Shown here in pieces: positions 3,287-61,376 of a stretch of 64,000 nt of DNA. This DNA is from Diplonema japonicum. Its lineage: Eukaryota > Protista > Euglenozoa: Diplonemea. The position numbers and the translations under genes are program-made. The stretch is from NCBI GenBank assembly GCA_964019335.1, contig OZ025752.1, positions 62,001 through 126,000 on the forward strand, written 5' to 3'. How positions within the stretch are numbered: the first letter of the stretch is position 1; each line of letters opens with the position of its first letter. The notes under the pieces are model-generated. The model was not told the DNA's origin. It did not search any database and worked only from the letters and a program-made list of their open reading frames with translations.

Positions 3287-6200
3287 ATGGATCCGTCGGT
3301 ACTTCTTAAGTACGAGCAAGGGAAGTGCCTCGGGTCTGGCGGACAAGGGTCGGTGTACAAGGCGGTGAGGAGGGTGGATGGAGGTATCTTTGCGATGAAA
3401 GTGTTGAAGGCGTTCGCAGAAGAGGTGCACAAGAAGAACGTGAAGGAGGTGCAGCACATGCTGAAGCTGAAGCACAGGAACCTGGTTCCCTGCCTTGACT
3501 TCTTCGAGTCGACAAAGCAGCTGGCAAAGGAATCCCTTGAGAAGGTGTGGCAGGTCCACATCGTGATGCCCCTGTATGGGAAAGGGGACCTCTGCTCATT
3601 CGTCGAAAAGGAGGGACCTCTCTCTCCGGAGAGGGCGGACAGGCTCTTGCGGGAGATGGGAGGGGTCCTTCAGTACATTCACGGTGAGGGCTTCATCCAC
3701 AGGGACGTGAAACCCCAAAATATCATGGTGTCGGGGAAGGGACCTCTTTCTGCGGCCAGTGTCGTTGGGGACGGCGGGGGTGAGGCAGAGTTCATCCTGG
3801 CCGACCTGGGACTGTCGAAGGAAGTGTCCTCCGGTGGGGTAGCGAGCTCCTATTTAGGCACACCAGCTTACATGGCACCCGACTTCTCAAAGGACAGCTA
3901 CACCAACAAAGTAGACATGTGGGCCCTCGGGGTGACTGTGTGCAACGTGGTGCTCGAAGAAGACCTGAGGGATCTCTTTCTGCGGTACCTGCATTTTAAC
4001 CGGGAGCTTGTGATGGAGAAGCTTCAGACCCACCTCCCCCCTGCCCTCTGGAGGGTTGTGGTCCGCCTCCTCTCCATCAACCCTTTGGAACGCCCCAGTG
4101 CACAGGAGATGCTGCAGACAGGACCGCCTGTGATGGTTCCTCAGCCGACTGGAATAGCTCTTCTTGCTTTTGGGAGTGTTGGTGGAGTGGAGAGGAAGAA
4201 GAAGCTCTGCGTGGCAGTGGGAGCAGGAGCGGAGGAGGTTCGGGTGGCGGCAGCAAAGGCCTTCTCTTCGGGGGGGCAGGAGCTCCTCAGGGTGCTCTGG
4301 TTGGAGGTCTTCGACAAGGACTTCGGGGAGTTCGTGGAGCAGGAGGACGGGGACATGGTGTTCGAGGACAAGGGACGGGTCCGTGTCGTGTTTGAAGCAC
4401 CGCTCCCGACCACCACTTCTTCAATCACCAGTGGCGGCAGCAACATGCACCCACCAGCAGCAGAAGCGTTCCCGACCACCACTGAGGCTGAACAAGGAGT
4501 TGAAGCGCTCCCGACCACCACTTCTTCAACCACCAGTGGCGGCAGCAACATGCACCCACCTGCTTCGAACAGCACGACCCTCACAAAAGAGGAGGGGAGG
4601 CTTGCCTTGGTCAGCGCTGTTTCAAAAGGAGACCTTGAGGAGATGAGGGATCTTGTTCTGGAGCGGGGTGTCGACCCTGGTGCTGCGGACAGCAATGGTT
4701 TCACAGCCCTGCACTATGCAGCTCGCGAAAACAACTGTGTCGAGGCTGTGGCTGCTCTCGTCTATTCTTACCACCAGGACCCTGGTGTCAGAACCAACGC
4801 TGGTTGGACACCAGTCCATGAAGCAGCAAAGAACGGAAACTTTGAAGCAGTTAAATATTTCGTCGAAACTCTCGGTCAAGATGCAGGTGTCAAAAGCAAG
4901 AACGGTCGGACACTGGTTCATGCTGCAGCAAAGTACGGCCACCTCGAGACTGTTAAATATCTCGTCGAAACATGCGGTCAAGATGCAGGTGTCAAAAGCA
5001 ACGACGGTTGGACACCGGTTAATGCTGCGGCATGTTCCGGCCACCTCGAGACAGTTAAATATCTCGTCGAATCTCGCGGTCAAGATGCAGGTGTCAAAAG
5101 CAAGAACGGTCGGACATCGGTTCATGCTGCAGCAAAGTACGGCCACCTCGAGACAGTTAAGTATCTCGTCGAAACATGCGGTCAAGATGCAGGTGTCAAA
5201 AACAACGACGGTTGGACACCGGTTAATTCTGCGGCATGTTCCGGCCGCCTCGAGACACTTAAATATCTCGTCGAAACATGCGGTCAAGATGCAGGTGTCA
5301 AGGACAACTACGGTTGGACACTGGTTCATGACGCAGCACTATGCGGCCAACTCGAGATAGTTAAATATCTCGTCGAAACTTGCTGTCAAAGCGCAAGTGT
5401 CAAAAACAACTACGGTCTGACACCGGTTCATTGTGCAGCAGAGTCCGGCCACCTCGAGACAGTTAAATACCTCGTCGAAGCTCGTTGCCAAGATGCAGGT
5501 GTCAAGAACAACAACGGTTGGACACCGGTTTATCATGCAGCACTATCCGGCCACCTCGAGACTGTTAAATATCTCGTCGAAACTCGCGGTCAAGATGCAG
5601 GTGTCAAAGACAACGACGGTCAGACACTGGTTCATGCTGCAGCACTATCCGGCGACCTCAAGACTGTTAAATATCTCGTCGAAACTTGCTGTCAAAGCAC
5701 AGGTGTCAAAAACAACTACGGTCTGACACCGGTTCATTGTGCAGCAGAGTCCGGCGACCTCGAGACAGTTAAATATCTCGTCGAAGCTCGTTGCCAAGAT
5801 GCAGGTGTCAAGAACAACAACGGTTGGACACCGGTTTATCATGCAGCACAGTCCGGCCACCTCGAGACTGTTAAATATCTCGTCGAAACTCGCGGTCAAG
5901 ATGCAGGTGTCAAAAGCAACGACGGTCTGACACCGGTTCATGCTGCAGCACTGTTCGGCGACCTCGAGACAGTTAAATATCTCGTCGAAACTCACAGTCA
6001 GCTCGCAGGTGTCAAATGCAGCAACAGTTGGACACCGGTTCATTGTGCAGCACTATCCGGCCACCTCGAGATAGTTAAATATCTCGTCGAAACATGCGGT
6101 CAAGATGCAGGTGTCAAAGACAACGACGGTTGGGCACCGGTTCATTGTGCAGCACAGTCCGGCGACCTCGAGACAGTTAAATATCTCGTCGAAACTCGCG

Positions 6201-11594: not shown

Positions 11595-11629
11595 CTCATC
11601 AAGATTTCATTCCCGGAAAAAAAAAAAAG

Positions 11630-11661
<32 letters not shown>

Positions 11662-11666
11662 ATCAA
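11595..11666 (+). mobile_element. Short poly(A)-tailed insertion with 8-bp TSD
   Basis: ctcatcaa (11595-11602) - gatttcattcccgg - A-tract - ctcatcaa (11659-11666). Other ankyrin repeats carry a single ctcgtcgaa at this position. Confidence 0.85.
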
Positions 11667-11762
11667 AACTCGCGGTCAAGACGCAGGTGTCAAAAACAAC
11701 AAACGGTTGGACACCGGTTCATGAAGCAGCACGGTCCGGCCACCTCGAGATAGTTAAAATAT

Positions 11763-11811
11763 CTCGTTGAAAGGTGAGGTGCGGCATCACGCACTCTTTC
11801 CGTCTCATACA

Positions 11812-11849
<38 letters not shown>

Positions 11850-11856
11850 GTTGAAA
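11763..11856 (+). mobile_element. Short poly(A)-tailed insertion with 10-bp TSD
   Basis: ctcgttgaaa (11763-11772) - 40-nt body containing the hairpin gtgcg/cgcac - A-tract - ctcgttgaaa (11847-11856). Confidence 0.85.
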
Positions 11857-17758: not shown

Positions 17759-18725
17759 GGAAAAGATGCTACTTTGATATTTCCGTGGGTGAGACACCAG
17801 AAGGCAGGGTTGTGATAGAGCTCTTCGACGATGTGGCCCCTAAGACGGCCGAAAACTTCCGCGCCCTGTGCACGGGCGAGAAGGGCGGAATCCCGGAACA
17901 CGAAGAGATAAAAATGCATTATAAAGGAAGCAAGTTCCACAGAGTCATCCCTGGGTTCATGTGCCAGGGAGGAGACTTCACAGCCGGCGACGGCACCGGA
18001 GGATGGTCAGTATTCGGTGAAAACTTCGATGATGAAGAGTTCGTAAAAACCCACTCCGGACCGGGCATCCTCTCCATGGCAAATGCCGGCCCTAACACAA
18101 ACTCATCCCAATTCTTCATCACCACTGTTGACTGCCCCCATCTCAACGGCAAACATGTTGTCTTTGGAAAAGTAATCAAGGGAATGTCAACCGTCAGAAA
18201 AATGGAGCTCACACCCACCAAGAAATATGACGTTCCTGAAAAAGATGTCACAATCACAGATTGCGGTACCCTGGAAGACGGTGAAGCGGACGGAGTTGCA
18301 TCCGATCCTTCTGATCAATATGAGGAATTTCCGCAGGACTGCACACCCGCCTTGACCGAGGAGGAGAAGGTGAAGGCCGGCGACGCCGTGAAACTTCTTG
18401 GAAACAACCATTTCAAAGCGAAGGAATTCCCGCAAGCTATCGCAAAGTACCAGAAGGCCAACAGGTACCTTTCTGCCGTCATACCTACGGACAGTAACAA
18501 GGCTGAGATTATCAAGCAGCAGATTGCTTGTTTCTCCAATATGGCCCAATGTTACCTGAAGTTGTCGAAGTGGCTCGAGGCCAAGAACGCCACTGCAGGG
18601 GCGATGAAACTGGAAACTGGTGACACCAACGCAAAAGTTGTCTTCCGGCATTCGCAAGCCCTCTTTGAGCTTAACCAGCTGGAGGAGGCGAAAACCTTCG
18701 CTACCAAGGTATTAAAGGGGAAGGG

Positions 18726-18783
<58 letters not shown>

Positions 18784-18912
18784 CAGGCAAAGGAGCTCTC
18801 TCCCGAGGACAGTGGTCCCAAGGATCTTCTTGCGAAAATTGCGGCAAAGAGCAAAACGCTTAAGGACAAGAGGAAGGCAGCGGTGAAGAAGTGGCTTTCT
18901 TCTGAGGAGTAG
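17755..18912 (+). CDS. CYP40: Cyclophilin-40 (PPIase + TPR), join(17755..18708,18787..18912)
   Basis: Motifs [47 protein letters not shown] and [10 protein letters not shown], plus three TPRs. Removing the intron restores the TPR segment ...FATK|AKELSPED. Confidence 0.93.
18709..18786 (+). other. GT-AG intron with an internal poly(A) tract (78 nt, phase 0)
   Basis: aag|gtatt...(A)n...acccag|gca. It interrupts a TPR helix with in-frame poly-Lys. Confidence 0.9.
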
Positions 18913-26025: not shown

Positions 26026-26821
26026 ATGGGTGCGCCGGAACACGACCAGAACAGCCATGTGACTCCCGTCGATGATCCGAAGGGAGAGATCGACAAGAGC
26101 AAGCAGGTTGACAACGATGACGAGGGGGATGAGGAGGCCGCCACCAGCATCGACAAGACTAAAGAGCAGCTTGCCGAGGAGGCGATCAGGAGGTGGCAGC
26201 AGTTCCACTACCCTTCCTGGGCCAGATACATGATTTACACCATGTTCGCCTGCTGTGTCATCAACCAGATCATGACTCTGGACCAGTGGCACGGAACCCA
26301 CATGTGGAGGAAACCCTTTGACCTGTTCCCCACAAACAACATTCCTGGTGGATGGCAGGAGGACGATCTTCGCTACGGATGTGCGATCCTGGGTCTACTC
26401 TCGTCGTGCTTTTCCTTTGTGCTGTCGCCGACTGCTGACAAGTTCAAGTTCATGTTCCTAGTAATGTTCACATCTGGTGTCCTTGGTTTGGTCAGCTTCG
26501 GAATGGATCTGTTCCACCTCAACGTGTGTTTTGCTTTAAAAAAAAAAAAAAAAAAAAAAAACCCAGAGGGCGACGGAGCTCCCGCAGTGCAACCAGATCA
26601 ACGACAACATGACCAACAAGTACATCTGCAACTTTGCTCGTTTCCGTGCCACCGTCATGTTCGACATCATCAGCGGTGTCTTTGGGATCTGCATGTCGTT
26701 CTTCATCCTTCACCAGGCCCTTACCGGTACTGTGTCGAGGAGGATGATCTTCAACGAGCAGAAGGGTACCTGGGACAAGATCGTCCTCTCCCCCGATGAT
26801 GCCTACAGCAAGGTGTTTTTG

Positions 26822-26856
<35 letters not shown>

Positions 26857-27314
26857 CTTCCCCAAGCGTTTTGCTCGTCAGAGGCCGTTCTTCAACCTGG
26901 CTGTGTTCCTTCTCGCCTGTATCAACGGGACGCTCCTTGCTCTTACCATCACTCAGACCACCGGGGATCTTCTCCAGTTCAAGGGCGAGGCAACCCCGAG
27001 GTACAACCCCTTCCGCACCACGCCCGTTGACCAGTACATCATCCAGGGGGACGAGGCTATTAGATACGGTATGGGAAAAAAAAAAAAAAAAAAAAAAAAA
27101 ATGCAGGTAGCTGGCCGTTGTTGAACTTCGAGATCCGTTTGTCGACGAACGCCCTGGCGCTGGTTGTGCTTGCGTTCCTTATCCAGTGGAGGAGAGATGG
27201 ACGCTTTGCGCAGTTCTGCGTGCTTCTGCTTCTTCTCGCTGCCTCTGTGCTGTACTTGTCTGCCTTTTCGCTTGACTACATTGAGTACGATGCTGTATGT
27301 GTTTCATTTTTTGG

Positions 27315-27361
<47 letters not shown>

Positions 27362-27636
27362 ACATATATACTACCCAGGCTTTCGACGATGGGTGCCAGT
27401 TTGCCAAGGCCAACAGCCAGGAGTGCGTGTACTCCAGGTACCTGGCTACCCTTATCTTTGATGGTTTCTGTGGATTCCTCCTTCTTTTCTTCTCTGTCTT
27501 CAACCTGTACCAGTGGCTCCTGCAGGCTGCCAAGCCTCGCGAGGTCATCGAGGGACGCACCTACGGCTGGTGGTGGAACGGAGAGTGGGCCGCCAAGAAG
27601 CAGGCGAAGGCTGTTAACAGAGCCCTTGAGGAATAG
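26026..27636 (+). CDS. Multipass membrane protein, two internally repeated 4-TM modules (467 aa); join(26026..26523,26567..26812,26855..27068,27107..27294,27379..27636)
   Basis: Four GT-AG A-tract introns join three ORF-track frames into one continuous reading frame. The two halves align (GW..LR / SWP..IR; F..D; C..C..RF/Y.AT..FD). Confidence 0.85.
26524..26566 (+). other. A-tract intron 1 (43 nt)
   Basis: aac|gtgtg...(A)n cccag|agg. Splicing restores the frame into the ORF at 26609. Confidence 0.85.
26813..26854 (+). other. A-tract intron 2 (42 nt)
   Basis: aag|gtgtttttg(A)n g|gcc. In frame; would read as poly-Lys if retained. Confidence 0.8.
27069..27106 (+). other. A-tract intron 3 (38 nt)
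   Basis: tacg|gtatggg(A)n tgcag|gtagc. Splicing restores the frame into the ORF at 27118. Confidence 0.85.
27295..27378 (+). other. A-tract intron 4 (84 nt)
   Basis: gct|gtatgt...(A)n...acccag|gct. In frame. Confidence 0.85.
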
Positions 27637-33639: not shown

Positions 33640-34980
33640 ACCAAGCAGCAAACATGAATGGCAAGGCAAGGAGAGGTCGGATGGACACCCCGCTGGTAGA
33701 CAACGGACAAGTTATCCACGAAGACTTTGAAAGGGCGGAAATCCTCGGGAAGTACTTCACTTCCATCAGCAAGTCCGAAAAAAACGACTACGAACCCTAG
33801 CACATCCAACTCCCCCCGACAGACTCAGAGAAAGCAGCGGCCCTCCAGACGATCTCCAAACTGCCCAAGGCCGACATCACCGTGTACACCGACGGATCAC
33901 CGACGAACGGGAAGTACAACGGAGCTCAGCGCAGGAGTCTGCGATCTCTGCGACAGCTACCAAGCGGAGATGACGGCAATCAGTGTGGCGCTCGCGAAGC
34001 TGGTGAAAGAAGACACACGAGAACAGCAGATCAACCTCCTGACCGACTCGATGGCAAGCTTGATGAAACTGAAACAGGGCCCATGTGGCTGGAGTGTGGC
34101 GAGACATACACGCGCTGACGAAAAATGGGAACTACCTCACATGCTGCTACGTCCCAGGCCACTGCGGACTAGAAGGGAACGAGAAAGCAGATGAGCTGGC
34201 GGAAAAAGGCAGGGAAGAAGAGGCAACCCAAAAAATCAGCATGGGCGCAGCGAAGAACCACCTGCATCAGACAGAGAAGCAAAACATAGTTGCTGGGTTT
34301 AAAGAAGGAGAGGACATACTACAAGTGGGCAGGGAAGACAGAAGCACCCAAAAGGATGGAAGGGCTCAGCAGAAAAGAAGAGGTGATGATCAATCAGCTG
34401 AAGTCCGGGCATCACAAGCTGTTGAAGAAAGACTTCAAGCAACGCATTTGCGAAAGATGCGGACCCGCAACAGAGAGAACGCTCGAACACCTCCTCCTGA
34501 AATGCCCTGCTACCAAAGCGGCCAGGGCTAAACACTTCGACACCCTGACGCTAAAGCACATCCTTGGGAAAGACCCCCGAAAAGCGATCCTATTCCTTGA
34601 AGAGACCGAAAACCAACCCCCCAAACCCACCACAGCAACCGACTAACCCGCCGACGCAGCAAAGCCGATCAAGGCGGCTGAGCGAATTGAAAGAGTGAAA
34701 AAAAAAAAAAAAAGCCCCCCCTCAAACCCACCCCAATATATTTGAAAAAAAAAAGAAAAAAAAAAAAGAAGAGGCTGAGGACCGGCACCCTCAGTAGCCT
34801 TCAAAAAAAAAAAAAAAAAAATGCCAAACAACCAGCAAAGCTTGTGGGTAGAGAACACCAGTACGGTCATGAGTACTCGGGCAACCGGGTGAGCGTCTCG
34901 AGACACTTCCAACCCACCTAGTGGGTGCGGCCTTAGCAAGTCGAAAAGGAAGTGGAATTTAAAAAAAAAAAAAAAAAAGA
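33640..34980 (+). mobile_element. Internally deleted Ingi/I-like LINE (RNase H, CCHC, structured 3'UTR, poly(A))
   Basis: Motifs VYTDGS, LLTDSMASL, YVPGHCGLEGNEKADELA and CERCG...LEHLLLKCP. The 3'UTR is shared with 50760-51054. Confidence 0.85.
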
Positions 34981-38410: not shown

Positions 38411-38607
38411 AAAAAAAACTTTTTTTTGACACCGGTAGTTTGTGAGAGGATAGAGTCCCCTTTACTTTTAGCCTATTTGGGCGATTGCATTCTCTTGAGA
38501 CACATCTCTTTTTCTCAGTGATTTTTATTGTGACTCTGTTTTTTCTCTCTCGTTCTGCCCCCCCTTTCCCTTTACAACATTTCAGCCACCCCCTCATAAC
38601 AGCAAAC

Positions 38608-40545
38608 ATGGATGTGTTCGTAAAGGACGCTGCAGGGAAGCGCAAAGAGATGGTGGTGAAGGAGCACAGCACGCTTGCGGAGGTGGTGGAGGAGGCAGAG
38701 AGGGTGCTGGGCTATGAGGTGAAGGGGTGCACGGAGCTGTGGTACGATGGGGCTGTGGTGGCAGAGGGAGGGGACAGCAGCTTCTGCGGGCTGACGGGGA
38801 TCAGTGCAGGCGACGAAGTGCAGGCCGTCTACTCCAATGCGAAGATGAAGGAAGAATTCAAGACAGGCAAGGTCCCCTTCGACCACACTTCCCCTGATGT
38901 GATGCGAGGCGATGCTGAGATCGCTCTTCTCGCAGTGAAGAGGGACACGAACTTGTTGAAGCACGCCCTCCCCTCCCTTAGGGGGGACAAGGGCTTTATG
39001 CTGTCTGCATTGAAGGCTGTCCACCGTGCTGATGAGGTCATTCACCATGCCACCCCCGAGCTCCTCGACGACGCTGGCTTTGCGGCCGACGCCATCATGA
39101 CAAAACCATTTGACAATCTTCTTAACTTTTCCAAGAGGTTGCAGACCGACCCGAGAGTGTGCCTTCTCCACAAGGCCAGGCAACAGCGATTGCTCCCCGA
39201 CTCTGTCCTTTCTGACGACACGGAGGTCGCCATGCTTCAGATCAAGATGTGGGACAGGGCCCACGAAGCCACGCCATGGGACTTTTCTGACGACCACGAG
39301 TGCTGTCTGCAGCATGTCTCTGAGCGTCTGCAGGGTGACAAGGAGTTGGTGCTGGCTGCTGTGGAGTATGACGGGATGAGCTTGAAGCACGCAGCGGGGC
39401 CCTTGAGGAACGACCCTGATGTTGTTCGTGCAGCTGTGCAGCAGAATGGGATGGCCTTGGGTTTTGCATCTGGGAAGGAGGAAGAAGAGGAAGGCTCGCA
39501 GAGCTACGGGAAGAAGCGAAAAGGTGTCCTTTGTTCACTGTGCATACGACGCATGGTCACTGTCCCAACAGGTACCCTCAAGCCTGGGCTTGTGAAGCTG
39601 CTGAGGCAGTATGACAAAGAGAAGAGGCAGGAGAAAAAAGCAAAAGAGGCAAAAGAAAAGGAAGAAGAGAAGGCGAAAGCAATAGAAAAGGGGGGAGAGA
39701 AGGAGAAAGCCATTGGGGAAAAGAGAGAGCTTGATGAACCAGCTGGAGACCAACCCCCTGCAAAGAAACCTAAAACAGAAGTGGTGTCCTTCAGAAGCAA
39801 CCCGGAGTTTGCGATGTTGGCGGTGAAGCAGAACTGGATGGCCGTTTGCCACCTCACAGGTGCGGCGAGGGACAGCAAGGAGGTGGCATTGAAGGCTCTT
39901 CGGGCAGATAATGATGCTTACGATTACCTACCAAAGCGACTTCAGGAAGACAAGGATGTGGCTGTGGCGATGGTGAGTTCGGACGGGAGGCGTGTGCAGT
40001 ACCTCTCCAAGAAGCTGAGGAAGGAAAAGTGTGTGGTGCTGGCGGCGGTGAAGCAAAACGGGACTGCATTGAAGTATGTGAAGCAGTACTTCGATGACGA
40101 CAGGGATGTGGCCTTGATGGCTTGCATCAGTGGCGGGTGGCCTTACCTCTCCGACAGGCTGAAGGGGGACAAGCAGCTCGCGATGAGGGCAGTGGCACAC
40201 GACGGAAAGCTCTTTGAGAAGCTCAGCCCAGAGCTTCGGAGCGATAAGGACGTGGCACTGATCGCTGTGAAGAGGATGGCAATGAACTCAAGGTACGGTG
40301 GACACACAACCTTGAAGATGGTGGGGGAGGGTCTGGCACCATTACTGGAATTTGCTTATGCCGTATTGAATGATAGTGACTGCACAGGAGTTGATGAGCT
40401 CAAGATGAGCGTGTTGCGCAGCACCCTGCCAGAAGGAGAAAAAATGCCAACTTCGATCGGTCGAAGAAGATTCAAGAAAAAAATAATATTCGTTGAATCT
40501 GAATCCGAAGAAGATGAGAACACTGAATCGAATAGGAGACAATAG
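38608..40545 (+). CDS. UBL-DUF4116-SAP-NLS copy C (645 aa)
   Basis: The ATG at 38608 follows the CATTTCAG cassette. The stop codon is supplied by an inserted retroposon. Confidence 0.85.
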   Translation: MDVFVKDAAGKRKEMVVKEHSTLAEVVEEAERVLGYEVKGCTELWYDGAVVAEGGDSSFCGLTGISAGDEVQAVYSNAKMKEEFKTGKVPFDHTSPDVMRGDAEIALLAVKRDTNLLKHALPSLRGDKGFMLSALKAVHRADEVIHHATPELLDDAGFAADAIMTKPFDNLLNFSKRLQTDPRVCLLHKARQQRLLPDSVLSDDTEVAMLQIKMWDRAHEATPWDFSDDHECCLQHVSERLQGDKELVLAAVEYDGMSLKHAAGPLRNDPDVVRAAVQQNGMALGFASGKEEEEEGSQSYGKKRKGVLCSLCIRRMVTVPTGTLKPGLVKLLRQYDKEKRQEKKAKEAKEKEEEKAKAIEKGGEKEKAIGEKRELDEPAGDQPPAKKPKTEVVSFRSNPEFAMLAVKQNWMAVCHLTGAARDSKEVALKALRADNDAYDYLPKRLQEDKDVAVAMVSSDGRRVQYLSKKLRKEKCVVLAAVKQNGTALKYVKQYFDDDRDVALMACISGGWPYLSDRLKGDKQLAMRAVAHDGKLFEKLSPELRSDKDVALIAVKRMAMNSRYGGHTTLKMVGEGLAPLLEFAYAVLNDSDCTGVDELKMSVLRSTLPEGEKMPTSIGRRRFKKKIIFVESESEEDENTESNRRQ

Positions 40546-40666
40546 CCACAAAAGCCTGTGGAAAACGAAGCAGCAGGGGAACCCCTACATACGTGTGAGG
40601 GCACAGGTCTTAGAGGCGTCACAAGAGCAGCAATGCGACTCATTTATGAGTTAGATTTTTAAAAAA
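40530..40666 (+). mobile_element. Short retroposon (SINE or truncated LINE tail) with gaatc TSD
   Basis: gaatc at 40525-40529 and 40667-40671. A 3' hairpin actcat-tt-atgagt precedes the A-tail. A second copy lies at 41166-41315. Confidence 0.75.
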
Positions 40667-40899
40667 GAATCTCTATCCGAATCTCATTAAAAGAAATCTT
40701 TGAAACCGGTAGTTTTTGAGAGGATAGAGTCCCCATTCTTTCTTTTAGCCCACTCCTCTTTTTTTTTTTTTTTTTTTTTTTTGTGGGCGAGCGATGGTAC
40801 CTTGGCAAGAGGTCTAGGCAGCGTCAGCCACCCCCTCATAACAGCAAACGGCCTCAACAGCAGCAGTTTAAAAAAAAAAAAAAAAAAACAGCAGCAAAC

Positions 40900-41360
40900 A
40901 TGGATGTGTTCGTAAAGGACGCTGCAGGGAAGCGCAAAGAGATGGTGGTGAAGGAGCACAGCACGCTTGCGGAGGTGGTGGAGGAGGCAGAGAGGGTGCT
41001 GGGCTATGAGGTGAAGGGGTGCACGGAGCTGTGGTACGATGGGGCTGTGGTGGCAGAGGGAGGGGACAGCAGCTTCTGCGGGCTGACGGGGATCAGTGCA
41101 GGCGACGAAGTGCAGGCCGTCTACTCCAATGCGAAGATGAAGGAAGAATTCAAGACAGGCAAGGTGAGCAAAAATAGGAGACAATAGCCACAAAAGCCTG
41201 TGGGAAACGAAGCAGCAGGGGAACCCCTACATACGTGTGAGGGCACAGGTCTTAGAAGCGTCCCAAGAGCAACAAAGCGACTCATTTACGAGTTAGATTT
41301 AAAAAAAAAAAAAAAAAGACAGGCAAGGTCACTTTCAACGACACTTCCCCTGATGTGAAG
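40900..41360 (+). pseudogene. UBL-family copy interrupted by a retroposon and truncated
   Basis: The UBL is intact. Gene sequence resumes after the second TSD copy (cactttcaacgacacttcccctgatgtga) and then breaks off. Confidence 0.8.
41152..41329 (+). mobile_element. 150-nt poly(A)-tailed retroposon with 14-bp TSD aagacaggcaaggt
   Basis: TSD copies at 41152-41165 and 41316-41329. The empty site is seen in the intact paralogs. Confidence 0.9.
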
Positions 41361-41364
41361 CCTC

Positions 41365-42513
41365 ACCTCCCCACAGCTATGGCAGCGAGTCAATGAGATT
41401 GTTACACTGTACCGGGAGCGAGAGGACGACGAGGAGAGGGGGCCGCTAGGGGTCTTGCTGAAGAGGTGGCTACCCTTCTTGAACAAGGGGTGGTCCTTCA
41501 TTGAAGGTTTGCGCGCTCTGGTGCCCAGTGCGAGACGCCATGAAGTAAGACAGGCGATCAGACCGGCTGTTGCAAAGGAATTGATCCACGGCAGGTCGTC
41601 TTTTGCTGGAATGGAAGCGGGTGCATGTCCGTCCACGAACGCCTGGTGGAGGAAGCTCCAGTCACGGAGACCGCTGATATCGTCAGACTGCGGCGGATCA
41701 TCAGCGGTGCAGTGTTCACGGTACACCCTCGAGTGTGGGAAGCAATTGGATGAACGTGAGGGTGTGGAAAGCTCGTCTCTAGCGTGCGACGTCTGCGACC
41801 ATCGATGCCAGACGACGACAGAAGTCACGGAGCACGCCCTATGGGAATGTGCACCAGCGAGAGCTGCCCTGACAAACGAAAGATATGGCGGGATGACACG
41901 AAGTGACCTACCTGCAGTGACCGCCCTCCACGGGATCATTCCAAGGGGCGCAACGGGGGCTGCGAAGCAACAGGCGGCAGTCGTGCAACGATACCTGTTG
42001 GATGTCGTGTCAAGACGAGACGCCAGAGCGGCTGAACGGAGCACCAGAATCCTCACCACCAACCCGTGGGATGGGATCACAACGGGGAAGCACACTGTGC
42101 CCACAGTGGAGCTGTTGAAATCGAACGGAGCGTCGGGAAAGGTCCTAATGTTCTACATGAAGAGCGTCCTCAGGTGGCTGAAAAGCCTAAGATGGTACGC
42201 AGGCAGGAAGTTGACGTCCGTCACGACGATGGAGCTCGCAGTAGACTATGAGCAGGCCACCCGACAGTCCTTGGCTGGACCCCTCGACGACCAGGACTGG
42301 CTCACAGAGAAGGCTGGAAGGATGCGATACATCTTAGGACGTATTCAGAAATGCACAGCAAAGAGTGGGAAGAATGCTTTCCCCGCCAACGCAAAGACAA
42401 GGGTACACACCCTTCGACATCTTGGGGGCCCGACGACACACGGCTACGACAGGAGACCACTCTTCTCCTCGAGCCAAACCGCCCCCTATCCTAAAACCAT
42501 TTCAGCTACCTAG
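41365..42513 (+). mobile_element. C-terminal fragment of a non-LTR-like ORF (second family)
   Basis: CDVC...EHALWEC zinc knuckle of the type found downstream of RT, plus LRW...ELAVDYE and GYDRRP shared with 42724-43980 and ~61800-61990. Confidence 0.6.
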
Positions 42514-42662
42514 CACGACTCCAAGCAATGTTTCTCGCCCAGATGCCGTCCATCTCATCGCGACAAACAGCCACCGCAGGCACCAGACAGCAACCGCAGA
42601 ACGGTGACCGATTAGTGTGAATTTCTCCCTGAACGGTGAGTACCCACCCGCACACCGAAATT

Positions 42663-42705
<43 letters not shown>

Positions 42706-42799: not shown

Positions 42800-43980
42800 C
42801 AATCAACCGACTCTTTTTTTTTTGCCGGTGGCTTCCCCGAATAGGATGGAGTTGGGCGCAGCTACTAGGTTGCAACACATCTTGGGCCGAACGCGGACAC
42901 ATCTTTAGAGAGGTGGTGAGGAAGGCCCGAAGTAGGACGCTGGCGGTCGAGAGGAGCACGATAAGCGGGATAGAGCCGGGGGCGGACCCCAAGACGAACC
43001 GATTATGGAGGACGGCCAAGGACCCGCTCATGTCCTACAGCCTGAGACGAGTGATCGCAGGAGGGGTTCCCTACCTAAACCCGCACGCAAATGCGAACCG
43101 AAAGAGCGTCCCACTGGCGCCTGAAGGTGACGACAACGGTGACGACGAGGAGAACATGGGCCAGGCACCAACGACGGAGGTATCGCACACGCAAGGATTC
43201 AGATGCGACCTGTGCAAGTCTCCACACCCGGACACGGTGACCTTACTCCGCCATCAGCTGTATGAGTGCGCCTGTGCACAAGAGGAACTGGCACTAGACG
43301 GAATGGAGCCGTTGCGCAACAGATCAGGATGGTCCCTATGTCTGGAGCTGCACGCGATACTGCCGAGGGGGCATGTCTTCGCACACCTGGAGAAGCTGCA
43401 GCGATACATGGCTGTGGTGGTCGGGAAACGGGATGTGGAGCTCATGCAAATAGACAACGCCAGCACACAGCCGCTGCCGTGGGTACGCAATGTGGAGGGA
43501 AGGAGATGCCTCGTGCCAACGGCGGGGGAGCTCGAAGGAGTGGGAGGAATCGTCGCAGAATTCTTGAACCCGCTGCTGCAGTGGTTGTCACAGCTACGAT
43601 GGGTGAAAGAGGACACCAGCTCTGAAGTGTCAGCGGTGGAATTGGCCATCGACTTCGAATGGACGACAGGCAAGTTACTGGGAGGTCTGCTGGAAGATAG
43701 GGCTCGCAAGATCAAAGCATTGATAAGAAAGCTGAACGCGGCATGCAGGGCACGGAAGAAGCCACGCCCCTTCCCAGCGGATGAACAGAAGAGAGTGAAG
43801 TCCCTCATCGCAATAGGTGGGAAGACGGCTATGGGTTTCGCCAGGAGGCCCATCTTCGCCACCCACTCCACGCACGACAAGCTGATGGAACTGAAAGCCG
43901 CTTACAAGCGAGACCGCATCACACGACTCCGCTCAAGGCCTCGATTGGAACGAAAGCAATGCTCCAGAAGGGGAGTATAA
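42800..43980 (+). mobile_element. C-terminal fragment of a non-LTR-like ORF (second family, diverged)
   Basis: RWLP.IGWSW, CDLC...RHQLYEC, LRW...ELAIDFE and GFARRP. Confidence 0.6.
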
Positions 43981-44319
43981 ATAGATAGCCCCCCCCAACC
44001 CACCCAAGGGCGGCCCTCCATGAGGGGGTTTGTCCTGCACTTTGAGTTTTTTTTTTCTTGCTGCACATGCTGTTTGTAACAGGTTATGCAGTGTCTTTTT
44101 CTTGTCCCTATTTATTCTTTCCCTTTCAGCAAACATTTCAGTGAGTTACCTGGTAGTAACCTACAGACAGTAGAAATATGAATGGTGGTCTTTCAGGTGG
44201 GGCAGGAATAGCAGGTTATTAAACTTGGCCTCTTTGGCTAACGATTGGCCTATCTATCTACAATCGGCAGGATCAACCAGGTTTCGACGGCCAGTCTAAA
44301 TACAAAGAAATGCTGGACT

Positions 44320-44386
<67 letters not shown>

Positions 44387-44449: not shown

Positions 44450-44756
44450 GCAACAAGAGGGTCATTTGTTGACATTTTCTTCCGAACGAACTCATATTTC
44501 TTCTTTGAGTTTCAAAGAGAAGAAAAAAAAAAAAAAAAAAAACCCCTCCCGTACCACCAATATATTTGACAAAAAAAAGAGAGGATACTGAGGACCAGCA
44601 TCCTCAGTAACCTTCAAAAAAAAAAAAAAAAAAAATGCCAACCAGAAAAGCTTGTGGGAAGAGAACCCGGGCAACCTGGTGAGCGTCTCAAGATACTTCC
44701 AACCCACCTAGTGGGTGCGGCCTAGCAAGTCGAAACGGAAGTGGAATTTAAAATTT

Positions 44757-44788
<32 letters not shown>

Positions 44789-50200: not shown

Positions 50201-50216
50201 TTTTTGAGAAGAAAAA

Positions 50217-50853
50217 TGGAAATATTAGCAAGGCTAAATAAGGAAAAGACGTGCAATAAGTGGGCAGGTAGAACGGAAGCACCCAAAAGGATGGAAGGGC
50301 TGAACAGGAAGAAAGAGGTGCTGATCAACCAGCTGAAGACTGGGCACCATGACCTGCTGAAGGTGGGATACGCCGAGCAGCGAATTTGCGTAAAGTGTGG
50401 CCCCAACACGAAGCGAACCCTCCAACATCTCTTCCTAGACTGTCCGTCATCCAAAGCAAGCAGGGACAAACACTTCGACACCCTGACGCTGAGACACATC
50501 CTTGTGGAGAACCCACGAAAAGCAATCCAATATCTCGAAGATACAGGGGACCTGCCCCCCTCCGCAACAACTCCACAACAACCAACTAACCTGCCGAAGT
50601 AGCATGCCAATCAGAAGGCGGCTGAGGCACTTCTGATTCATTCAGAATCCCGAGATCCCATCCCAGATCCCCAATCCTGTTTCTCGCAGAAACAGAGAAC
50701 ACCACCAACCCCCCCACTACAGCAGCCGACGAGACAGACGCAGCAGTGAAAATAAAAAAGCCCCCCTGAACAAGTTTACCCCCACCCCTATAACGTGATA
50801 AAAAAAAAAGAAAAAAAAAAAAGAGGATACTGAGGTCCGGCACCCGCAGTAGC

Positions 50854-50887
<34 letters not shown>

Positions 50888-51054
50888 GTAAAGTGCCAAA
50901 CAACCAGCAAAGCTTGTGGAATGAGAACACCAGTACGGTCATGAGTACCCGGGCAACCGGGTGAGCGTCTCGAGACACTTCCAACCCACCTAGTGGGTGC
51001 GACCTTAGCAAGTCGAAAAGGAAGTGGAATTTAAAAAAAAAAAAAAAAAAAAAA
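50217..51054 (+). mobile_element. 5'-truncated LINE insertion (CCHC + 3'UTR + poly(A))
   Basis: CVKCG...LQHLFLDCP. The empty site gagaagaaaaagtcccc is seen in the duplicate at ~63439-63455. Confidence 0.9.
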
Positions 51055-51379: not shown

Positions 51380-53681
51380 ATGAGGAAAACACGACACCTT
51401 GACAAGGAGCTGACGACAGTGTTGAGAAACGGGTCGATTGGAGCTCTGGCGAACGCAACCATGAACACGTGGAAAAACGTGTGTGAAGGCGTCCGGAAGC
51501 TAGATTGGAACTTGGAGACAGAAAGGGACCTGCTGAAAGGGGACCTGGACGAGGCACTGATTGAAGTACAACGGCTGGACGAAGCCCTAGCACAAAGGGT
51601 GCGGGAGCTTGACAAGAGAGCGAGAATGCGGAGGGAAGCAAAGTATGAAGAGCGTTTGAACACACACTTCCGCGAGGAAAGGCGGAGGATGACGGCCTTT
51701 GTGAGGAACTCCCAAACGGCAGGAGCACAAGCCGTGGCGAACAGCGAGGGGGCGATGACGGCGGACCTCAGAGAGATGGATGATGCACGAGGAATGGGAC
51801 AGGATCTTCTGCCTGTACGAAGTGGGCGGAGAGCCGAAGTACCAAGACTTCAAAGAACGATACGGTGCATACATTGAGAAGAACGAGATGGCCTTGCTCC
51901 CGCTGACGGGGAGCGACTTGCGAGAGGTGCTGATGAAGAAAACCGCCCCCCGATAGGCGGTGGTGATGATACGCGAAAGGAAGACTTCGTGGTGGGAGAC
52001 CTGCAAGAAGGAGAGAACGTTCTGACAATGGGAGACATCAACCTACACGAGGCGTGGAGCGCGTTCGCAACGCAGAGCGAGGGCGGCAGGAAGGTGATGA
52101 CATGGGTCGCGGAGACGGAAAGGATAATTTGGAACGACCCACGCAAACCAACCTGGCAAAGAAATATACAACGCTCCAGCCCAGACATCGTGATCGGGCA
52201 GCCAAGGTGGCCGAGGAAATGGAAACTGCTGGAAGGCTGGGTATCGGATCACCGACCAGTCATGACAGAAGTCCCATACGAGAAAACCACAGAGCAAAAA
52301 GCAGCACGAAAGGTACTACAATGGCAGTGACGAAAAGCAGACTGGGCAAAGTACACATTGGACCTTGAACACAAAGCTCCCAAGGTGGAAAGGTGCAAAG
52401 ACCCCAAAGAAGCGATAGCACGACTCATCGGACACATAAGAAGAGCATCCCGAGAAAACATCCCCCGCATCCCACAGAGACCAAGAGAAGAAAGAGAGCT
52501 GTGGTGGACCGAAGAGATACGAAAACTGCAAGACGAGGAAAACACCCTGAAACAAAAGCTCGGAGAACATGGAGGGAGCGAAGAAGAAGGGGAAGAACTG
52601 CAGAGACTGGGGAGCAACTGATGAAGAGTGAAAGGGAAAAGGCTTGGTTGGAGGTGACAAAGAAGCTGGGGAACGTGGGAGGAATAGGGCCGGTGTTCCG
52701 AATAGTTAGGGCAATGGACGGAAGAGCATCCAAGACCAACACCGACGTACCCTTAGTCGTGAAGAATGACGTTATCCACAAAAAAGCAAAGAAGGCTGAG
52801 ATCCTAGGGGAGTACTTTGCATCCATAAGCAAGTCAACCCAAGGACACGGCTACAACCCCGACCTCAAACAAAGTAATCACGACGCCTCCGAAGTACCTT
52901 TCAACATTGAAGAACTGAACAACGCTCTCGGTGAAATAAAAACGCACAAGAGCCCCGGCAAAGATGGTTTGCACAATGAGATGCTGAAGCAACTGGGTCC
53001 GAAAGCGAAAAAAACTCTCCTACATGTATTCAACCTATCATGGCAAGGAGGCTGTGTCCCACAAAGCTGGCGAGATGCACTCACAAAGCCCTTGCCCAAA
53101 CCGATGAAGGACCTCACGGACCCCAGCAGCTATCGTCCCATCGACCTCACCAGCAACCTGTGCAAGCTCGCTGAGAGGATGATAAAGGCAAGACTCAACT
53201 ACTTACTGGAAGATTCGACATCGAACGTGCACAAGCTCTGCAACACACAAGCCGGATTTCAAGCAGGCCGAACAACAATAGAACAGGTTGCAGCACTCAC
53301 ACAGAGGCTTAAGGGCGGTCAAAAAAAGAAGAAAGTCTCCTACACCATATTCCTCGACTTCGAAAAAGCATTCGACACGGTGCAAAAAGCAAAGCTAATG
53401 GAGAAGCTGACGGCCATGAAGCTCCCACCGCTGTACTTCCACACCGGCGCCTTCCTACAGAATAGACAGGCAGCAGTAAATCTGGAAGGAGTGACAAGCG
53501 ACAACCGTGAGAAGGAAGAAGGCGTACCGCAGGGAACGGTGCTCTCACCATTGCTGTTCCTGTTCTACGTGGACAACATAGCGAAAGCCCTTGAAGAGGA
53601 AGGACAAAGGGTCTTCGCATCGCGGACGACATGACAGCTGTGATCACCGCAGACAACCACGCAGAAGCACAGAAAAAGGCT
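51380..53681 (+). mobile_element. Ingi/I-like LINE, frameshifted (coiled-coil ORF fragment, APE endonuclease, reverse transcriptase)
   Basis: APE motifs GDINLH, SSPDI and SDHRPV. RT motifs KSPGKDGL, YRPIDLTS, QAGF, FLDFEKAFD, GVPQGTVLSPLLF and a frameshifted ADD. Confidence 0.9.
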
Positions 53682-54782
53682 TACCCCCAGGGAAGTGCAA
53701 GAGATCAACACCTTGCACGCCGCCAAGAAAGCAAGAAAGCCTCCTGCGAAGCTCAAGCTTGCTGAGGCTGAAAAGGCCAAAAATAGGCCGCTACGCAGCC
53801 ACCTATGGTACCACGGCGGCCCAGCGCTGGTACCGCGCGAAGGAAGACATCACGGTGCCAACGTCCAGTATATCAGACTGGAAACACCGCTTTGGTAACT
53901 CCAAGGTCGATCCCCCTGCCGCACCCGTTACTGCGGGTCGCAAGCCTCTTCTGAACGAGGAAGAAACAACCAAGCTCTTTGCTTGGATCCAGGTGCAGAA
54001 CGGAAGGGGGGTGCCGGTAGCAGCGTCGGACATCTGCCTGTATGCAGAGGGTCTCCTGCGCTGCAACCCGCTGCGGAAGGAGAACCTCGAGGCGTTTGGG
54101 GGAACGGTGTCTTTCTCCCAAGCCTGGGCCAACCAGCTGTGCTCCAAGCATGGCATGACAAGCCGCCGCCCAAAAACAGGGAAGTCTAGCAGCCTCAATG
54201 ATACCCAAGCAGCAAGGAGGTTCGCAGAGTACGTCGGAAGGACCATCAAAGAACATGGGATCAGGCCAGAGTTGACCTGGAACATGGACCAGACGGCGCT
54301 TCCCCTGCTGCCGCTGGGGAAGAAGACGAAGGCTAAAAGGGGTTCCAAGGTTGTCAAGGTTAGGGGCTTGGGGGACAAGCGTGCCGTCACCGGACAGTTT
54401 TGCGTTTCCCTGTCTGGTGGCAAACTGCATCCGCAGTTAATTTACACGGGAAGAACAGAACCAGCCCGCTGCAGGAAATACCCCGGGTCCGTCCCTCGTG
54501 TTGCACACCCCCCAAAAGGCTGGAGTTTAACAGCTTCGAAATCCCACTGGGCCACCCAAGAAACGCTTCAGCTCTGGGTAAAATGTGTCTTTCTCCCCTG
54601 TTGCTATAAACTTATAAAGTCATCGGGCTGGGCACCCACCGAGCCCATCTTGCTCATCCTAGATGACTACAATGGCCACACTATGGATGATTTTGTGAAC
54701 TTGTTTTTAGAAACAAACGTTCACTTAGCTTTTGTCCCTCCAGGCCTCACCTATTTGTGCCAGCCCTGGACATAGGACTGAC
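53682..54782 (+). mobile_element. pogo-family transposase (CENP-B-like HTH + DDE_1, DD35D), frameshifted
   Basis: GRKPLL, WNMDQT and LILDDY. QP(L)D is split by a 1-nt deletion that is shared with the copy at ~35520. Confidence 0.85.
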
Positions 54783-54866
54783 GACTCATGTGTCATCTGA
54801 CACAAATACGGTTTCCGCCGCTTCTTGGGTGGACGAAACTTCGTCACTCACTTAAAATCATTTCAG

Positions 54867-56232
54867 CAACCTCTCATGGCAAAAAGGCTGCGTGCCCCAA
54901 CGCTGGCGTGACGCCCTTACGAAGCCCTTACCTAAGCCGATGAGAGATCGCACAGAACCCTGCAACTACCGTGATAAAGACACGGCTGCACTTTCTACAA
55001 GAAGACCCCGGGTCGGACCAACACGGACTATGCCACACACAAGCTGGGTTCCAAGCAGGCAGGTCCACCGTGGAACAGATAGCAGCCCTGACACAGAAGC
55101 TGAAGGACGGACAAGCAGAGAAGAAGGTGACTTTCTCGATATTTCTGGATTTCGAAAAGGCCTTCGACTCAGTCCAGAAGTCTCGGCTGATGAGAAAGCT
55201 GGAAGAAATGAACACACCCCCACTGTACCTGAATTGGATCTGGAGCATTCCTGCACAACAGGCAGGCAGCAGTGAGCATGGACGGGGTGAAAGGAACGAA
55301 CCGCGAGAAAGAAGAAGAGTGCCTCAGGGAACAGTACTCTCACCACTACTGTTCTTATACCATGTAGACGACATCGCAAGGACACTGGAGGCACAAGGGA
55401 ACGAGATCCTGGCATCACTGTACGCGGACGACATGGCGGCGATTGTCACTGGAGACAGCCATGAGGAAGCGCAGACAAAGGCACAGGCAGTTCTTGAGAA
55501 GATAGACGCCTGGGCAGAACGCTGGGGACTGAAACTGTCACGCAGGAAGACTTGTTACATGACAACAGGCAGCAAGAACAAGCAACAGAGCACACTGTAC
55601 TTCATGGAGAGCACACAGAAGACTGAAGTGAAGTACGAGGAGAACCCCATGTTCCTAGGAGTCATCTTTGACGAGAAAGTGACCTTCAAAGCACACGTAA
55701 GTTATGTGAAAAGAAGGCTGAATGAGAGGCTCAAGGTGCTGAGTGCACTGTCAGGCAAGGAATGGGGAAGCATGGCCAGAAGGTGACGTGAAAGACCTCC
55801 AAAAGATCCACAACGTTGCAGCCAGGAGCATCACCAGCTGCCAAATCTCTACCCCCGTCGAGACTCTCATGAGAATAGCGCGACTCTGGCCGATCGAGAG
55901 TCTGGTACGTGGGAACTACCTCACATGCTGCTACGTCCCAGGCCACTGCGGACTAGAAGGGAACGAGAAAGCAGATGAGCTGGCGGAAAAAGGCAGGGAA
56001 GAAGAGGCAACCCAAAAGATCAGCATGGGCGCAGCGAAGAACCACCTGCATCAGACAGAGAAGCAAAACATAGTTGCTGGGTTTAAAGAAGGAGAGGACA
56101 TACTATAAGTGGGCAGGGAAGACAGAAGCACCCAAAAGGATGGAAGGGCTCAGCAGAAAAGAAGAGGTGATGATCAATCAGCTGAAGTCCGGGCATCACA
56201 AGCTGTTGAAGAAAGACTTCAAGCAACGCATT
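54867..56232 (+). mobile_element. Second Ingi/I-like LINE fragment (RT, RNase H end)
   Basis: FLDFEKAFD, VPQGTVLSPLLF, YADD, FLGVIFD and YVPGHCGLEGNEKADELA. Confidence 0.88.
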
Positions 56233-56489
56233 TTGCGCATTTTGTCCCCCTGGGCTCACCTACATGGTTCAACCGATGGATATTGGGTTGAACGCAGCTG
56301 TAAAGTAATCTATTAATTAAGAAAGGTAGTAGGCCACACGAAGGCTCGACAAGCTGATTGCCTCAGGGGCAGCCAGGGAGGACAAAGATGCAGAAAGGGA
56401 ACCCTGGGGGTTTCTTCGCGCGGTTGCCGTTTGCAGCCCAGGCCAGTATAATATGTAGGTGGTAGTGGACCAGGCCCCCTGACGGCCTT

Positions 56490-59040: not shown

Positions 59041-59411
59041 TGAAATAAAAGAGACGGTAGCCCCCTTTCTTTTGTTTAGCCTGTGGGGTGGCGATTGCAT
59101 TTTCTTGGCCTGACGAGAGCGTGTTGCGCAGCACCCTGCCAGAAGGAGAAAAAATGCCAACTTCTGATAAATCCGAAGAAGAAGGAAGAACACTGAATCT
59201 GAAAGAAGAATTAAAAAAAAAACTTTTTTTTGACACCGGTAGTTTGTGAGAGGATAGAGTCCCCTTTACTTTTAGCCTATTTGGGCGATTGCATTCTCTT
59301 GAGACACATCTCTTTTTCTCAGTGATTTTTATTGTGACTCTGTTTTTTCTCTCTCGTTCTGCCCCCCCTTTCCCTTTACAACATTTCAGCCACCCCCTCA
59401 TAACAGCAAAC

Positions 59412-61376
59412 ATGGATGTGTTCGTAAAGGACGCTGCAGGGAAGCGCAAAGAGATGGTGGTGAAGGAGCACAGCACGCTTGCGGAGGTGGTGGAGGAGGC
59501 AGAGAGGGTGCTGGGCTATGAGGTGAAGGGGTGCACGGAGCTGTGGTACGATGGGGCTGTGGTGGCAGAGGGAGGGGACAGCAGCTTCTGCGGGCTGACG
59601 GGGATCAGTGCAGGCGACGAAGTGCAGGCCGTCTACTCCAATGCGAAGATGAAGGAAGAATTCAAGACAGGCAAGGTCACTTTCAACGACACTTCCCCTG
59701 ATGTGATGCGAGGCGATGCTGAGATCGCTCTCCTTGCAGCGAAGACTAGCCCAAGCTTGTTGAGGCACGCCCTCCCCTCCCTTAGGGGGGACAAGGGCTT
59801 TATGCTGTCTGCATTGAAGGCTGTCCACCGTGCTGATGAGGTCCTTCGCCATGCCACTCCCCAGCTCCTCGACGACGCTGGCTTTGCGGCCGACGCCATC
59901 ATGACAAAACCATTGCCCAATCTACTCAAGTTTTCCAAGAGGTTGCAGACCGACCCGAGAGTGTGCCTTCTCCACAAGGCCACAAAACAGCGATTGCTCC
60001 CCGACCCTGTCCTTTCTGACGACACGGAGGTCGCCATGCTTCAGATCAAGATGTGGAGCAAGTCAGAAGCCAACTCACAGGTTCGTCGATCAGGGTGGGG
60101 GCATCGTCGTTCCTATAGGATGCGTCGTCTGCGTTTTAGTAACAAGAATGACCACGAGTGCTGTCTGCAGCATGTCTCTGAGCGTCTGCAGGGTGACAAG
60201 GAGTTGGTGCTGGCTGCTGTGGAGTATGACGGGATGAGCTTGGAGCACGCAGCGGGGCCCTTGAGGAACGACCCTGATGTTGTTCGTGCAGCTGTGCAGC
60301 AGAATGGGATGGCCTTGGGTTTTGCATCTGAGAAGGAGGAAGAAGAGGAAGGCTCGCAGAGCTACGGGAAGAAGCGAATGGTAGTCCTCCGTTCACTGTG
60401 CATACGACGCATGGTCACTGTCCCACCGAACACCCTCAAGCCTGGGCTTGTGAAGCTGCTGAGGCAGTATGACAAAGAGAAGAGGCAGGAGAAAAAAGCA
60501 AAGGCAAAAGAAAAGGAAGAAGAGAAGGCGAAAGCAAAAGAAAAGGAGGGGGAGAAGGAGAAAGCCATTGGGGAAAAGAGAGAGCTTGATGGGCCAGCTG
60601 GAGACCAACCCCCTGCAAAAAAACAGAAGACAGAAGTGGTGGATGGGGAGTTGTCCTTCAGAAGCAACCTGGAGTTTGCGATGTTGGCGGTGAAGAAGGA
60701 CTGGGTGGCCGTTTGCCACCTCACAGGTGCGGCGAGGGACAGCAAGGAGGTGGCATTGGAGGCTGTTAAGGCAGATGTAAGTGCTTACGATTACCTACCA
60801 AAGCGACTTCAGGAAGACAAGGAAGTGGCGATGACGGCGGTGAGTTCGGACGGGAAGCGTTTGAAGTACCTCTCCAAGAAGCTGAGGAAAGACAAGTGTG
60901 TGGTGCTGGCGGCGGTGAAGCAGAACGGGACTGCATTGAAGTGTGTGAAGCAGTACTTCGATGACGACAGGGATGTGGCCTTGGTGGCTTGCATCAGCGG
61001 CGGGTGGCCTTACCTCTCCGACAGGCTGAAGGGGGACAAGCAGCTCGCGATGAGGGCGGTGGCGCACCACGGAAAGCTCTTTGAGAAGCTCAGCCCAGAG
61101 CTTCGGAGCGATAAGGACGTGGCATTGATCGCTGTGAATAGGATGACAATGTTCTCAATGCACCGTGGACGCACCGCCTTGAACATGGTGGGGGAGGGCC
61201 TGGCACCATTACTGGAATTTGCTTATGCCGTATTGAACATGAGCGGCTGCAGAGGAGTTGATGAGCTCAAGAAGAGCGTGTTGCGCAGCACCCTGCCAGA
61301 AGGAGAACAAATGCCAGATTCTGATAAATCTGAGTCCGAAGAGGAGGCATGTGAATCTGAATCTGAATCTGAATGA
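59412..61376 (+). CDS. UBL-DUF4116-SAP-NLS copy F (654 aa)
   Basis: Intact paralog. The upstream ~59115-59411 duplicates ~38310-38607. Confidence 0.85.
   Translation: MDVFVKDAAGKRKEMVVKEHSTLAEVVEEAERVLGYEVKGCTELWYDGAVVAEGGDSSFCGLTGISAGDEVQAVYSNAKMKEEFKTGKVTFNDTSPDVMRGDAEIALLAAKTSPSLLRHALPSLRGDKGFMLSALKAVHRADEVLRHATPQLLDDAGFAADAIMTKPLPNLLKFSKRLQTDPRVCLLHKATKQRLLPDPVLSDDTEVAMLQIKMWSKSEANSQVRRSGWGHRRSYRMRRLRFSNKNDHECCLQHVSERLQGDKELVLAAVEYDGMSLEHAAGPLRNDPDVVRAAVQQNGMALGFASEKEEEEEGSQSYGKKRMVVLRSLCIRRMVTVPPNTLKPGLVKLLRQYDKEKRQEKKAKAKEKEEEKAKAKEKEGEKEKAIGEKRELDGPAGDQPPAKKQKTEVVDGELSFRSNLEFAMLAVKKDWVAVCHLTGAARDSKEVALEAVKADVSAYDYLPKRLQEDKEVAMTAVSSDGKRLKYLSKKLRKDKCVVLAAVKQNGTALKCVKQYFDDDRDVALVACISGGWPYLSDRLKGDKQLAMRAVAHHGKLFEKLSPELRSDKDVALIAVNRMTMFSMHRGRTALNMVGEGLAPLLEFAYAVLNMSGCRGVDELKKSVLRSTLPEGEQMPDSDKSESEEEACESESESE

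Follow-up and report, generated by a model that had tools for sequence, protein, structure and literature searches.

The window analyzed here is a 64,000-nucleotide stretch of the Diplonema japonicum genome (contig OZ025752.1). On its forward strand, positions 40900-41163 hold the first 88 codons of a gene copy made of DUF4116 repeats, which run up to the insertion point of a short insert and are 100% identical to, e.g., 59412-59675. The paralogs of this host copy are intronless open reading frames (ORFs) of 630-715 codons, built of DUF4116 repeats. The full paralog at 59412-61376 scored DUF4116 with an E value of 1.9e-69. A protein homologue search with exon 1 of the host copy (88 amino acids) gave no match. 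Beyond the insert, the host copy resumes for a final 31 paralog-matching bases (41328-41358, forward strand) that are 100% identical to 59676-59706. Past 41358 it departs from every paralog, and the frame then continues to a TGA at 41394-41396. Read from the sequence, exact splicing would give a host product of ~110 residues ending at this TGA, and without splicing the frame meets a stop 7 codons into the insert. Upstream of the gene, a run of A19 followed by CAG (40870-40891) lies 8 nt before the ATG of the host gene family in the layout of a cis-intron 3′ end, and a T24 run lies ~90 nt further upstream. Either run is a candidate spliced-leader acceptor mark.

The sequence past the break at 41358/41359 belongs to a 5′-truncated dispersed repeat with a long ORF (41359-42660, forward strand), in which a Cys-x2-Cys...His-x4-Cys motif is encoded. 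Contigs of other sequencing runs continue this repeat in the 5′ direction with sequence unrelated to that 5′ of 41358. Relatives of its ORF (41455-42513) were found at 42826-43872 and at several loci on contigs C13, C85, and C43, and no Pfam family matched it. Because this repeat replaces everything past 41358, the host copy is a dead 5′ fragment, under no selection. The two repeats at 41359-42660 and 42826-44050 are diverged copies with 29% amino acid identity, the same Cys/His motif, and no Pfam match, and a long T-run follows each of them within ~300 nt (42670-42703 and 44321-44375). The 3′ part of this dispersed repeat was extremely abundant in sequencing run X4 and was also present at 95-99% in runs X1-X3, from two other organisms, as the only part of the locus that these runs contained.

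The insert itself occupies 41166-41315. It is 150 nt long, ends in an A-run, and has a perfect 14-bp duplication on both sides, as read directly from the window sequence. The left duplication copy, aagacaggcaaggt, lies at 41152-41165, and its sequence occurs once in each of six paralogs; the right copy, again aagacaggcaaggt, lies at 41316-41329 (both forward strand). Between them are a 135-nt body (41166-41300) and a pure A-run of 17 (41301-41317), the final two A's of which can be assigned either to the tail or to the duplication, so that the poly(A) tail is 15-17 nt long. In a self-comparison of the window, 40892-41165 was 99.3-100% identical to the six uninterrupted paralogs (100% for those at 36258, 38600, 57096, and 59404, 99.6% for 29871, and 99.3% for 49038), and 41316-41358 was 100% identical to 59664-59706. 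An exact 14-bp repeat at the edges of an insert that the paralogs lack is not a product of chance.

The duplication carries potential splice sites. The left copy holds AAG|GT, a formal donor at 41163|41164, and the right copy holds three AGs: at 41317-41318 (the end of the A-run plus G), at 41321-41322 (CAG), and at 41326-41327 (AAG). It is the last of these that restores the paralog sequence (gcaAG|gt, at 41327|41328). Alignment with the six empty-site paralogs gave a clean 164-nt gap, and excision of 41164-41327 as a hypothetical 164-nt GT-AG intron on the forward strand would return the exact paralog sequence. The structural part of the earlier note stands up well against these data. The A-tailed insert and both copies of its 14-bp duplication are where it had placed them, all six paralogs are empty at the site, the two competing AGs upstream of the restoring one are present, and the truncation of the host copy is real. 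The duplication does contain AG|GT, in phase, which makes exact excision formally possible; the restoration that the note had claimed agrees with the alignment and is a formal excision only.

When the whole assembly (62.5 Mb, 132 contigs) was searched, the insert body proved to be a 5′-truncated copy of an ~170-nt retroposon, which we call SINE-A. The search returned 16 matches on eight contigs, the window copy included, and we count no fewer than 14 genomic copies. The flanks of these copies are unrelated to one another except within three duplicated groups. Most copies finish in GAGTTAGATTT followed by A-runs of 11-52, and seven extend ~36 nt further at the 5′ end (GAAGACCCTGGGGGTGGTGCC...), giving the ~170-nt unit, which has no coding capacity. 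Truncation at the 5′ end varies: the window copy lacks ~36 nt and another (L012) lacks ~62 nt. Duplications of 7 and ~12 bp flank other copies, for an overall range of 7-14 bp. The earlier reading of the insert as a retroposon copy is thus well supported by its dispersed A-tailed relatives with different flanks and 5′ truncations. Only the window copy (1 of 16) lies in a coding region; one other forms the 3′ end of a gene, and the rest sit in A-rich intergenic DNA. An Rfam scan of three full-length copies found no known RNA family, with nothing near the gathering score, and no polymerase III-type head (tRNA, 7SL, or 5S) such as a SINE in the strict sense would have.

Positions 2-135 of the insert are identical (134/134) to copies on contigs C91, C49, and C107, and 98.5% identical to three more. 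Because of this 134/134 identity, the window copy is very young, and the perfect duplication and the pure A17 run are further signs of its youth. The first base of the insert (G, at 41166) is absent from the family sequence. The potential donor GTGAGC thus has three sources: the duplication gives GT, the untemplated base gives G, and the element gives AGC. Four tandemly duplicated loci (L009, L010, L013, and L014; G000:C85, 108-204 kb) carry a SINE-A derivative with an internal 17-nt deletion. Their duplication is ~12 nt long (CTGATTTCAAGG), the target ends in CAAGG|T as at the window target, and the 5′ junction also reads GTGAGC, behind 10 unexplained bases.

An older SINE-A copy, 94-95% identical, was found by self-comparison of the window at 40531-40666 (forward strand), at the 3′ end of the neighboring paralog. 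It gives paralog 38608-40545 its final four codons and stop (NRRQ*), and ORF 38485-40545 terminates inside it. The same NRRQ* frame also stops the unspliced copy at 40900. This resemblance had suggested that the insert might be a retrocopy of the 3′ untranslated region of the gene family's own mRNA; that idea was rejected because the genome search placed independent A-tailed copies in unrelated places.

Candidates for the machinery that moved SINE-A are present nearby. LINE remnants at 51380-56300 and 50216-50800 encode Exo_endo_phos_2, two RVT_1, and RNase H domains; an ORF (53591-54775) with DDE_1 and Tc5 HTH domains breaks into them. A LINE 3′ fragment terminates in an A-rich tail at ~50800. 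We found no 3′ sequence common to the window LINE remnants and SINE-A. The window also holds a second short A-tailed retroposon family (44636-44778, 50887-51054, and ~34727-34978) that ends in GGAAGTGGAATTT(A)n, contains GGTGAGCG internally, and has the core AAAGCYTGTGGGAA in common with SINE-A.

The introns of this genome fit the published description of D. japonicum, in which the donor is (G)/GTATG, the acceptor is CAG, and the median length is 41 nt (PMC12621601); a set of 10,131 D. japonicum introns with RNA support has been published. In this species, uniquely, A is the commonest base at the polypyrimidine-tract position of introns, a trait that was reported and left unexplained there (PMC12621601). 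Five introns lie in the window, four of them in the gene at 26026-27636 and one in a cyclophilin gene (18709-18786). Those of 43 nt and 38 nt are proven by a corrected frame shift, and the others are assigned by analogy. Each opens with GT(A/G)T, has 7-20 nt before an A-run of A24 to ~A60, and closes with a short tail, which in the five introns reads CCCAG, G, TGCAG, a 23-nt stretch with a CCCAG end, and CCCAG. In a whole-genome pattern count, GTATG followed by 0-20 nt, A20, 0-8 nt, and CAG gave 348 matches versus 14 in the control, and the looser form with A16 and 0-15 nt gave 580 versus 48. Genomic introns typically finish in A(n)CAG, A(n)CCAG, or A(n)CCCAG. With GTGAG as the donor, the same A-run/CAG pattern gave 94 matches versus 54 in the control, and several of these hold an internal GTATG. 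GTGAG is a rare donor at best in this genome, and some GTGAG sites may be used.

Further sampling was done on 264 kb of available sequence, made up of the window and G000:C13:100001-300000. A-runs or T-runs of at least 16 bases numbered 228 in this sample, ~1 per 1.2 kb. An ORF-based intron finder recovered the window introns from it and almost none on C13. Elsewhere in the genome, a pair of paralogous introns (C52:318493-318568 and C15:676949-677021) has an exon whose last 9 nt (GCGATCCTG) are reverse-complementary to bases 11-19 of the intron (CAGGATCGC); pairing of the two would form a hairpin with the 5′ splice site in its loop.

How far does the insert resemble such an intron? The match in layout that the earlier note had seen to all five resident introns held in part. 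Both have GT-AG ends and carry their A-run just ahead of the 3′ splice site, whereas donor type, length, and acceptor type differ. Resident introns are ~40 nt long, start with G|GTATG or GTGTG, and have CAG straight after the A-run. The hypothetical intron would be 164 nt long (four times the median) and would start with GTGAGC, not the G|GTATG or GTRT of the species, and its restoring AAG is the third AG after the A-run. The A17 run is in fact followed by a CAG, at 41320-41322, but the paralog-restoring acceptor is instead the AAG at 41325-41327. Most likely, the insert is not cut out precisely.

One alternative is that the A17 tail and the first AGs after it act as an imprecise 3′ splice signal or as a site of spliced-leader addition. 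If the A-run recruits the splicing machinery, the AGs at 41318 or 41322 are likelier acceptors than the restoring AG. Joining 41164 to 41318 would leave nine extra in-frame bases (ACAGGCAAG) and a duplicated Thr-Gly-Lys, while joining to the CAG at 41322 would leave five bases and throw the reading out of frame. It is just as possible that the insert's tail mimics a site of leader addition, because the same A-run plus CAG layout is also found 8 nt before the family ATG (40870-40891), where it may be a leader acceptor; leader addition in the insert would start a new, 5′-truncated mRNA. The frame-fixed window introns (26525-26567, 27070-27107, and 27296-27379) all take the first AG that follows their A-run, which is consistent with this reading, as is the direct termination of many genomic introns in A(n)CAG. 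However, the sample holds few frame-verified introns, and the donor would remain off-consensus for either splice. Overall, we regard a signal of this kind at the insert as unlikely.

A broader conjecture is worth stating alongside. The diplonemid spliceosome may read an A-run as a 3′ splice signal, in which case sense-oriented A-tailed retroposons would bring their own acceptor and need only a GT at the 5′ junction. Such insertions would then be raw material for a minority of new introns, and introns with ...ATTT(A)n or ...GGAATTT(A)n would be survivors of them. We offer this tentatively, as an idea that is more probably wrong than right by a good way.

Birth of an intron at this locus, with splicing of 41164-41327 and exact restoration of the reading frame, fares worse still. 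The in-phase AG|GT in the duplication, the return of the paralog sequence on removal, and an A-run ahead of the acceptor in the style of resident introns all speak for it, as does the modest excess of GTGAG donors over the control (94 versus 54). Against it, the donor is not the GTATG of the species (PMC12621601), and at 164 nt the intron would have four times the median length of 41 nt. Restoration needs an AAG that is third among the AGs after the A-run and has a consensus-type CAG 5 nt upstream of it, and the host is a truncated fragment under no selection. We therefore consider precise splicing here to be very unlikely. In sequencing run X4, contigs of ~100-150 nt break off where the filled site and the paralogs diverge. 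Since the spliced form would equal the paralog (59404-59706) up to 41358, junction reads that do not reach 41359 are indistinguishable from reads of the paralog.

The presence of AG|GT in the target is itself unremarkable. AGGT is present in 5.5% of the 14-mers in long ORFs of the 264 kb available, and ~1 in 18 coding targets is expected to contain it. An ankyrin gene copy in the window carries two further young A-tailed inserts flanked by target-site duplications. In the first (11609-11659), a 14-nt body is followed by an A-run, and the duplication is CTCATCAA; in the second (11777-11846), a 40-nt body that starts with GGTGAGG is followed by A34, and the duplication is CTCGTTGAAA. Neither of these can be excised as a GT-AG intron with restoration of the target. 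One of three inserts is thus excisable where the prior is 1 in 18, so the outcome at the DUF4116 copy is unremarkable. The ankyrin inserts show that coding DNA does receive very short 5′-truncated retrocopies in this genome, and they suggest that nicking is preferred after ...AATAT. Both of them (within 11595-11856) occupy the same position in consecutive ankyrin repeat units, and an uninterrupted copy at 4840-5100 is without either.

The earlier note had gone further and proposed that target-primed retroposition of short A-tailed RNAs may be the intron generator here. Taken as a general claim, this would make the A-runs of the genome's introns fossil poly(A) tails. Where both splice sites come from one duplication, the upstream exon and the intron must finish with the same bases. 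The comparison that the note had called for, between the bases before the intron AG and the end of the upstream exon, did not show this agreement. By manual tallies of the pattern listings, upstream exons ended in AG in 77 of the 580 GTATG...A16...CAG matches (13%). Among 97 distinct introns, all of which end in CAG, the exon end (within a 14-nt upstream flank) was G in 47, AG in 7, and CAG in none. The exons before the five window introns end in AAC, AAG, ACG, GCT, and AAG. In ~25 introns with tails of at least 8 nt, the tail did not resemble the end of the exon, with the exception of C15:676949, where AACCTGCAGT is repeated; this repeat is one base off register, and the C52 paralog does not have it. 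The tails instead share a short C-rich consensus (CAG, CCAG, CCCAG, or CACAG), which indicates a signal; they are not copies of exon ends.

The A-runs themselves were also searched for duplications. For ~300 A-runs of at least 12 bases in the 264 kb, the 9-mer that follows the run was sought within 400 nt upstream, and 8 matches were found versus 6 and 2 in controls. Genuine duplications were present only at the A-runs starting at 11813 and 41301 (2 of ~300), and the remaining matches were tandem repeats. The great majority of A-runs show no sign of recent retroposition.

Some observations do lean toward the general proposal. A-tailed micro-inserts with duplications occur in coding sequence, and a minority of GTATG introns have ...ATTT, ...GATTT, or ...GGAATTT directly before the A-run, motifs that resemble the 3′ ends of SINE-A and of the second short family. 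AATTT plus A12 was found in GTATG introns 16 times versus 0 in the control, and the intron at C10:304283 contains GTTAGATTT(A)n, with which SINE-A finishes over its final nine bases. However, ATTT precedes 5% of all A-runs and so is not specific to introns, and the GTTAGATTT-bearing intron has no duplication and continues after its A-run into an ordinary T-rich stretch. With exon ends (AG in 77/580, CAG in 0/97), intron tails, and A-run duplications at control level all in disagreement with it, retroposition as the generator of these introns is hard to credit.

We are left with a reading that we consider probable: a young retroposon insert in a dead gene fragment, made by recent target-primed retroposition and "excisable" by coincidence. 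The insertion is plain in the data, as a sense-oriented, 5′-truncated copy of SINE-A RNA with a 14-bp duplication; entry of that RNA copy into the DUF4116 gene copy produced the duplication. SINE-A was probably mobilized by an endonuclease/reverse-transcriptase LINE of the type in the window. We infer target-primed reverse transcription on good grounds, because the window holds both LINE remnants and an A-tailed LINE 3′ fragment. The AG|GT in the duplication would be a coincidence of the target sequence. As the A-run ahead of the 3′ splice site serves as a species-wide signal, one that any poly(A) tail mimics, we infer that the likeness to resident introns reflects this signal and not a shared origin.

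If the insert were spliced, it would be a retroposon caught in the act of becoming an intron, in a lineage with an odd A-rich intron signal. Retroposon introners and the A-run trait (PMC12621601) were already known, and a functional reading of the insert, judged from what the DNA itself offers, is attractive yet unlikely. As it stands, the locus is a clean and datable retroposition that documents an active short retroposon family and target duplications of 7-14 bp. It also yields a useful negative: the resident A-runs lack the duplication footprint expected if they had arisen from poly(A) tails through an AG|GT target.

Introners that take a splice site from their target are already established (PMC9860276; PMC12130899). 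The earlier note was correct that described introners are mostly DNA transposons; yet non-LTR retrotransposon introners are on record and make up ~5% of classified introner families (PMC12130899). The locus is like an introner in that a mobile element and its duplicated target present an in-phase GT and AG. It is unlike one in that introner families comprise many spliced copies in unrelated genes, whereas SINE-A has 1 of 16 copies in a coding region, and that copy lies in a dead fragment. Compared with LINE-dependent short retroposons, SINE-A differs in having no tRNA, 7SL, 5S-like, or ribozyme head detected with Rfam and no LINE found with a matching 3′ end, and in having the core AAAGCYTGTGGGAA in common with the other short family of the window, whose copies finish in GGAAGTGGAATTT(A)n. 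In other respects the likeness is close: dispersed copies, a poly(A) tail, variable duplications of 7-14 bp, 5′ truncation, no coding capacity, empty paralog sites, and one added, untemplated base where the 5′ end joins the target. Taken together, the event is a textbook short-retroposon insertion.
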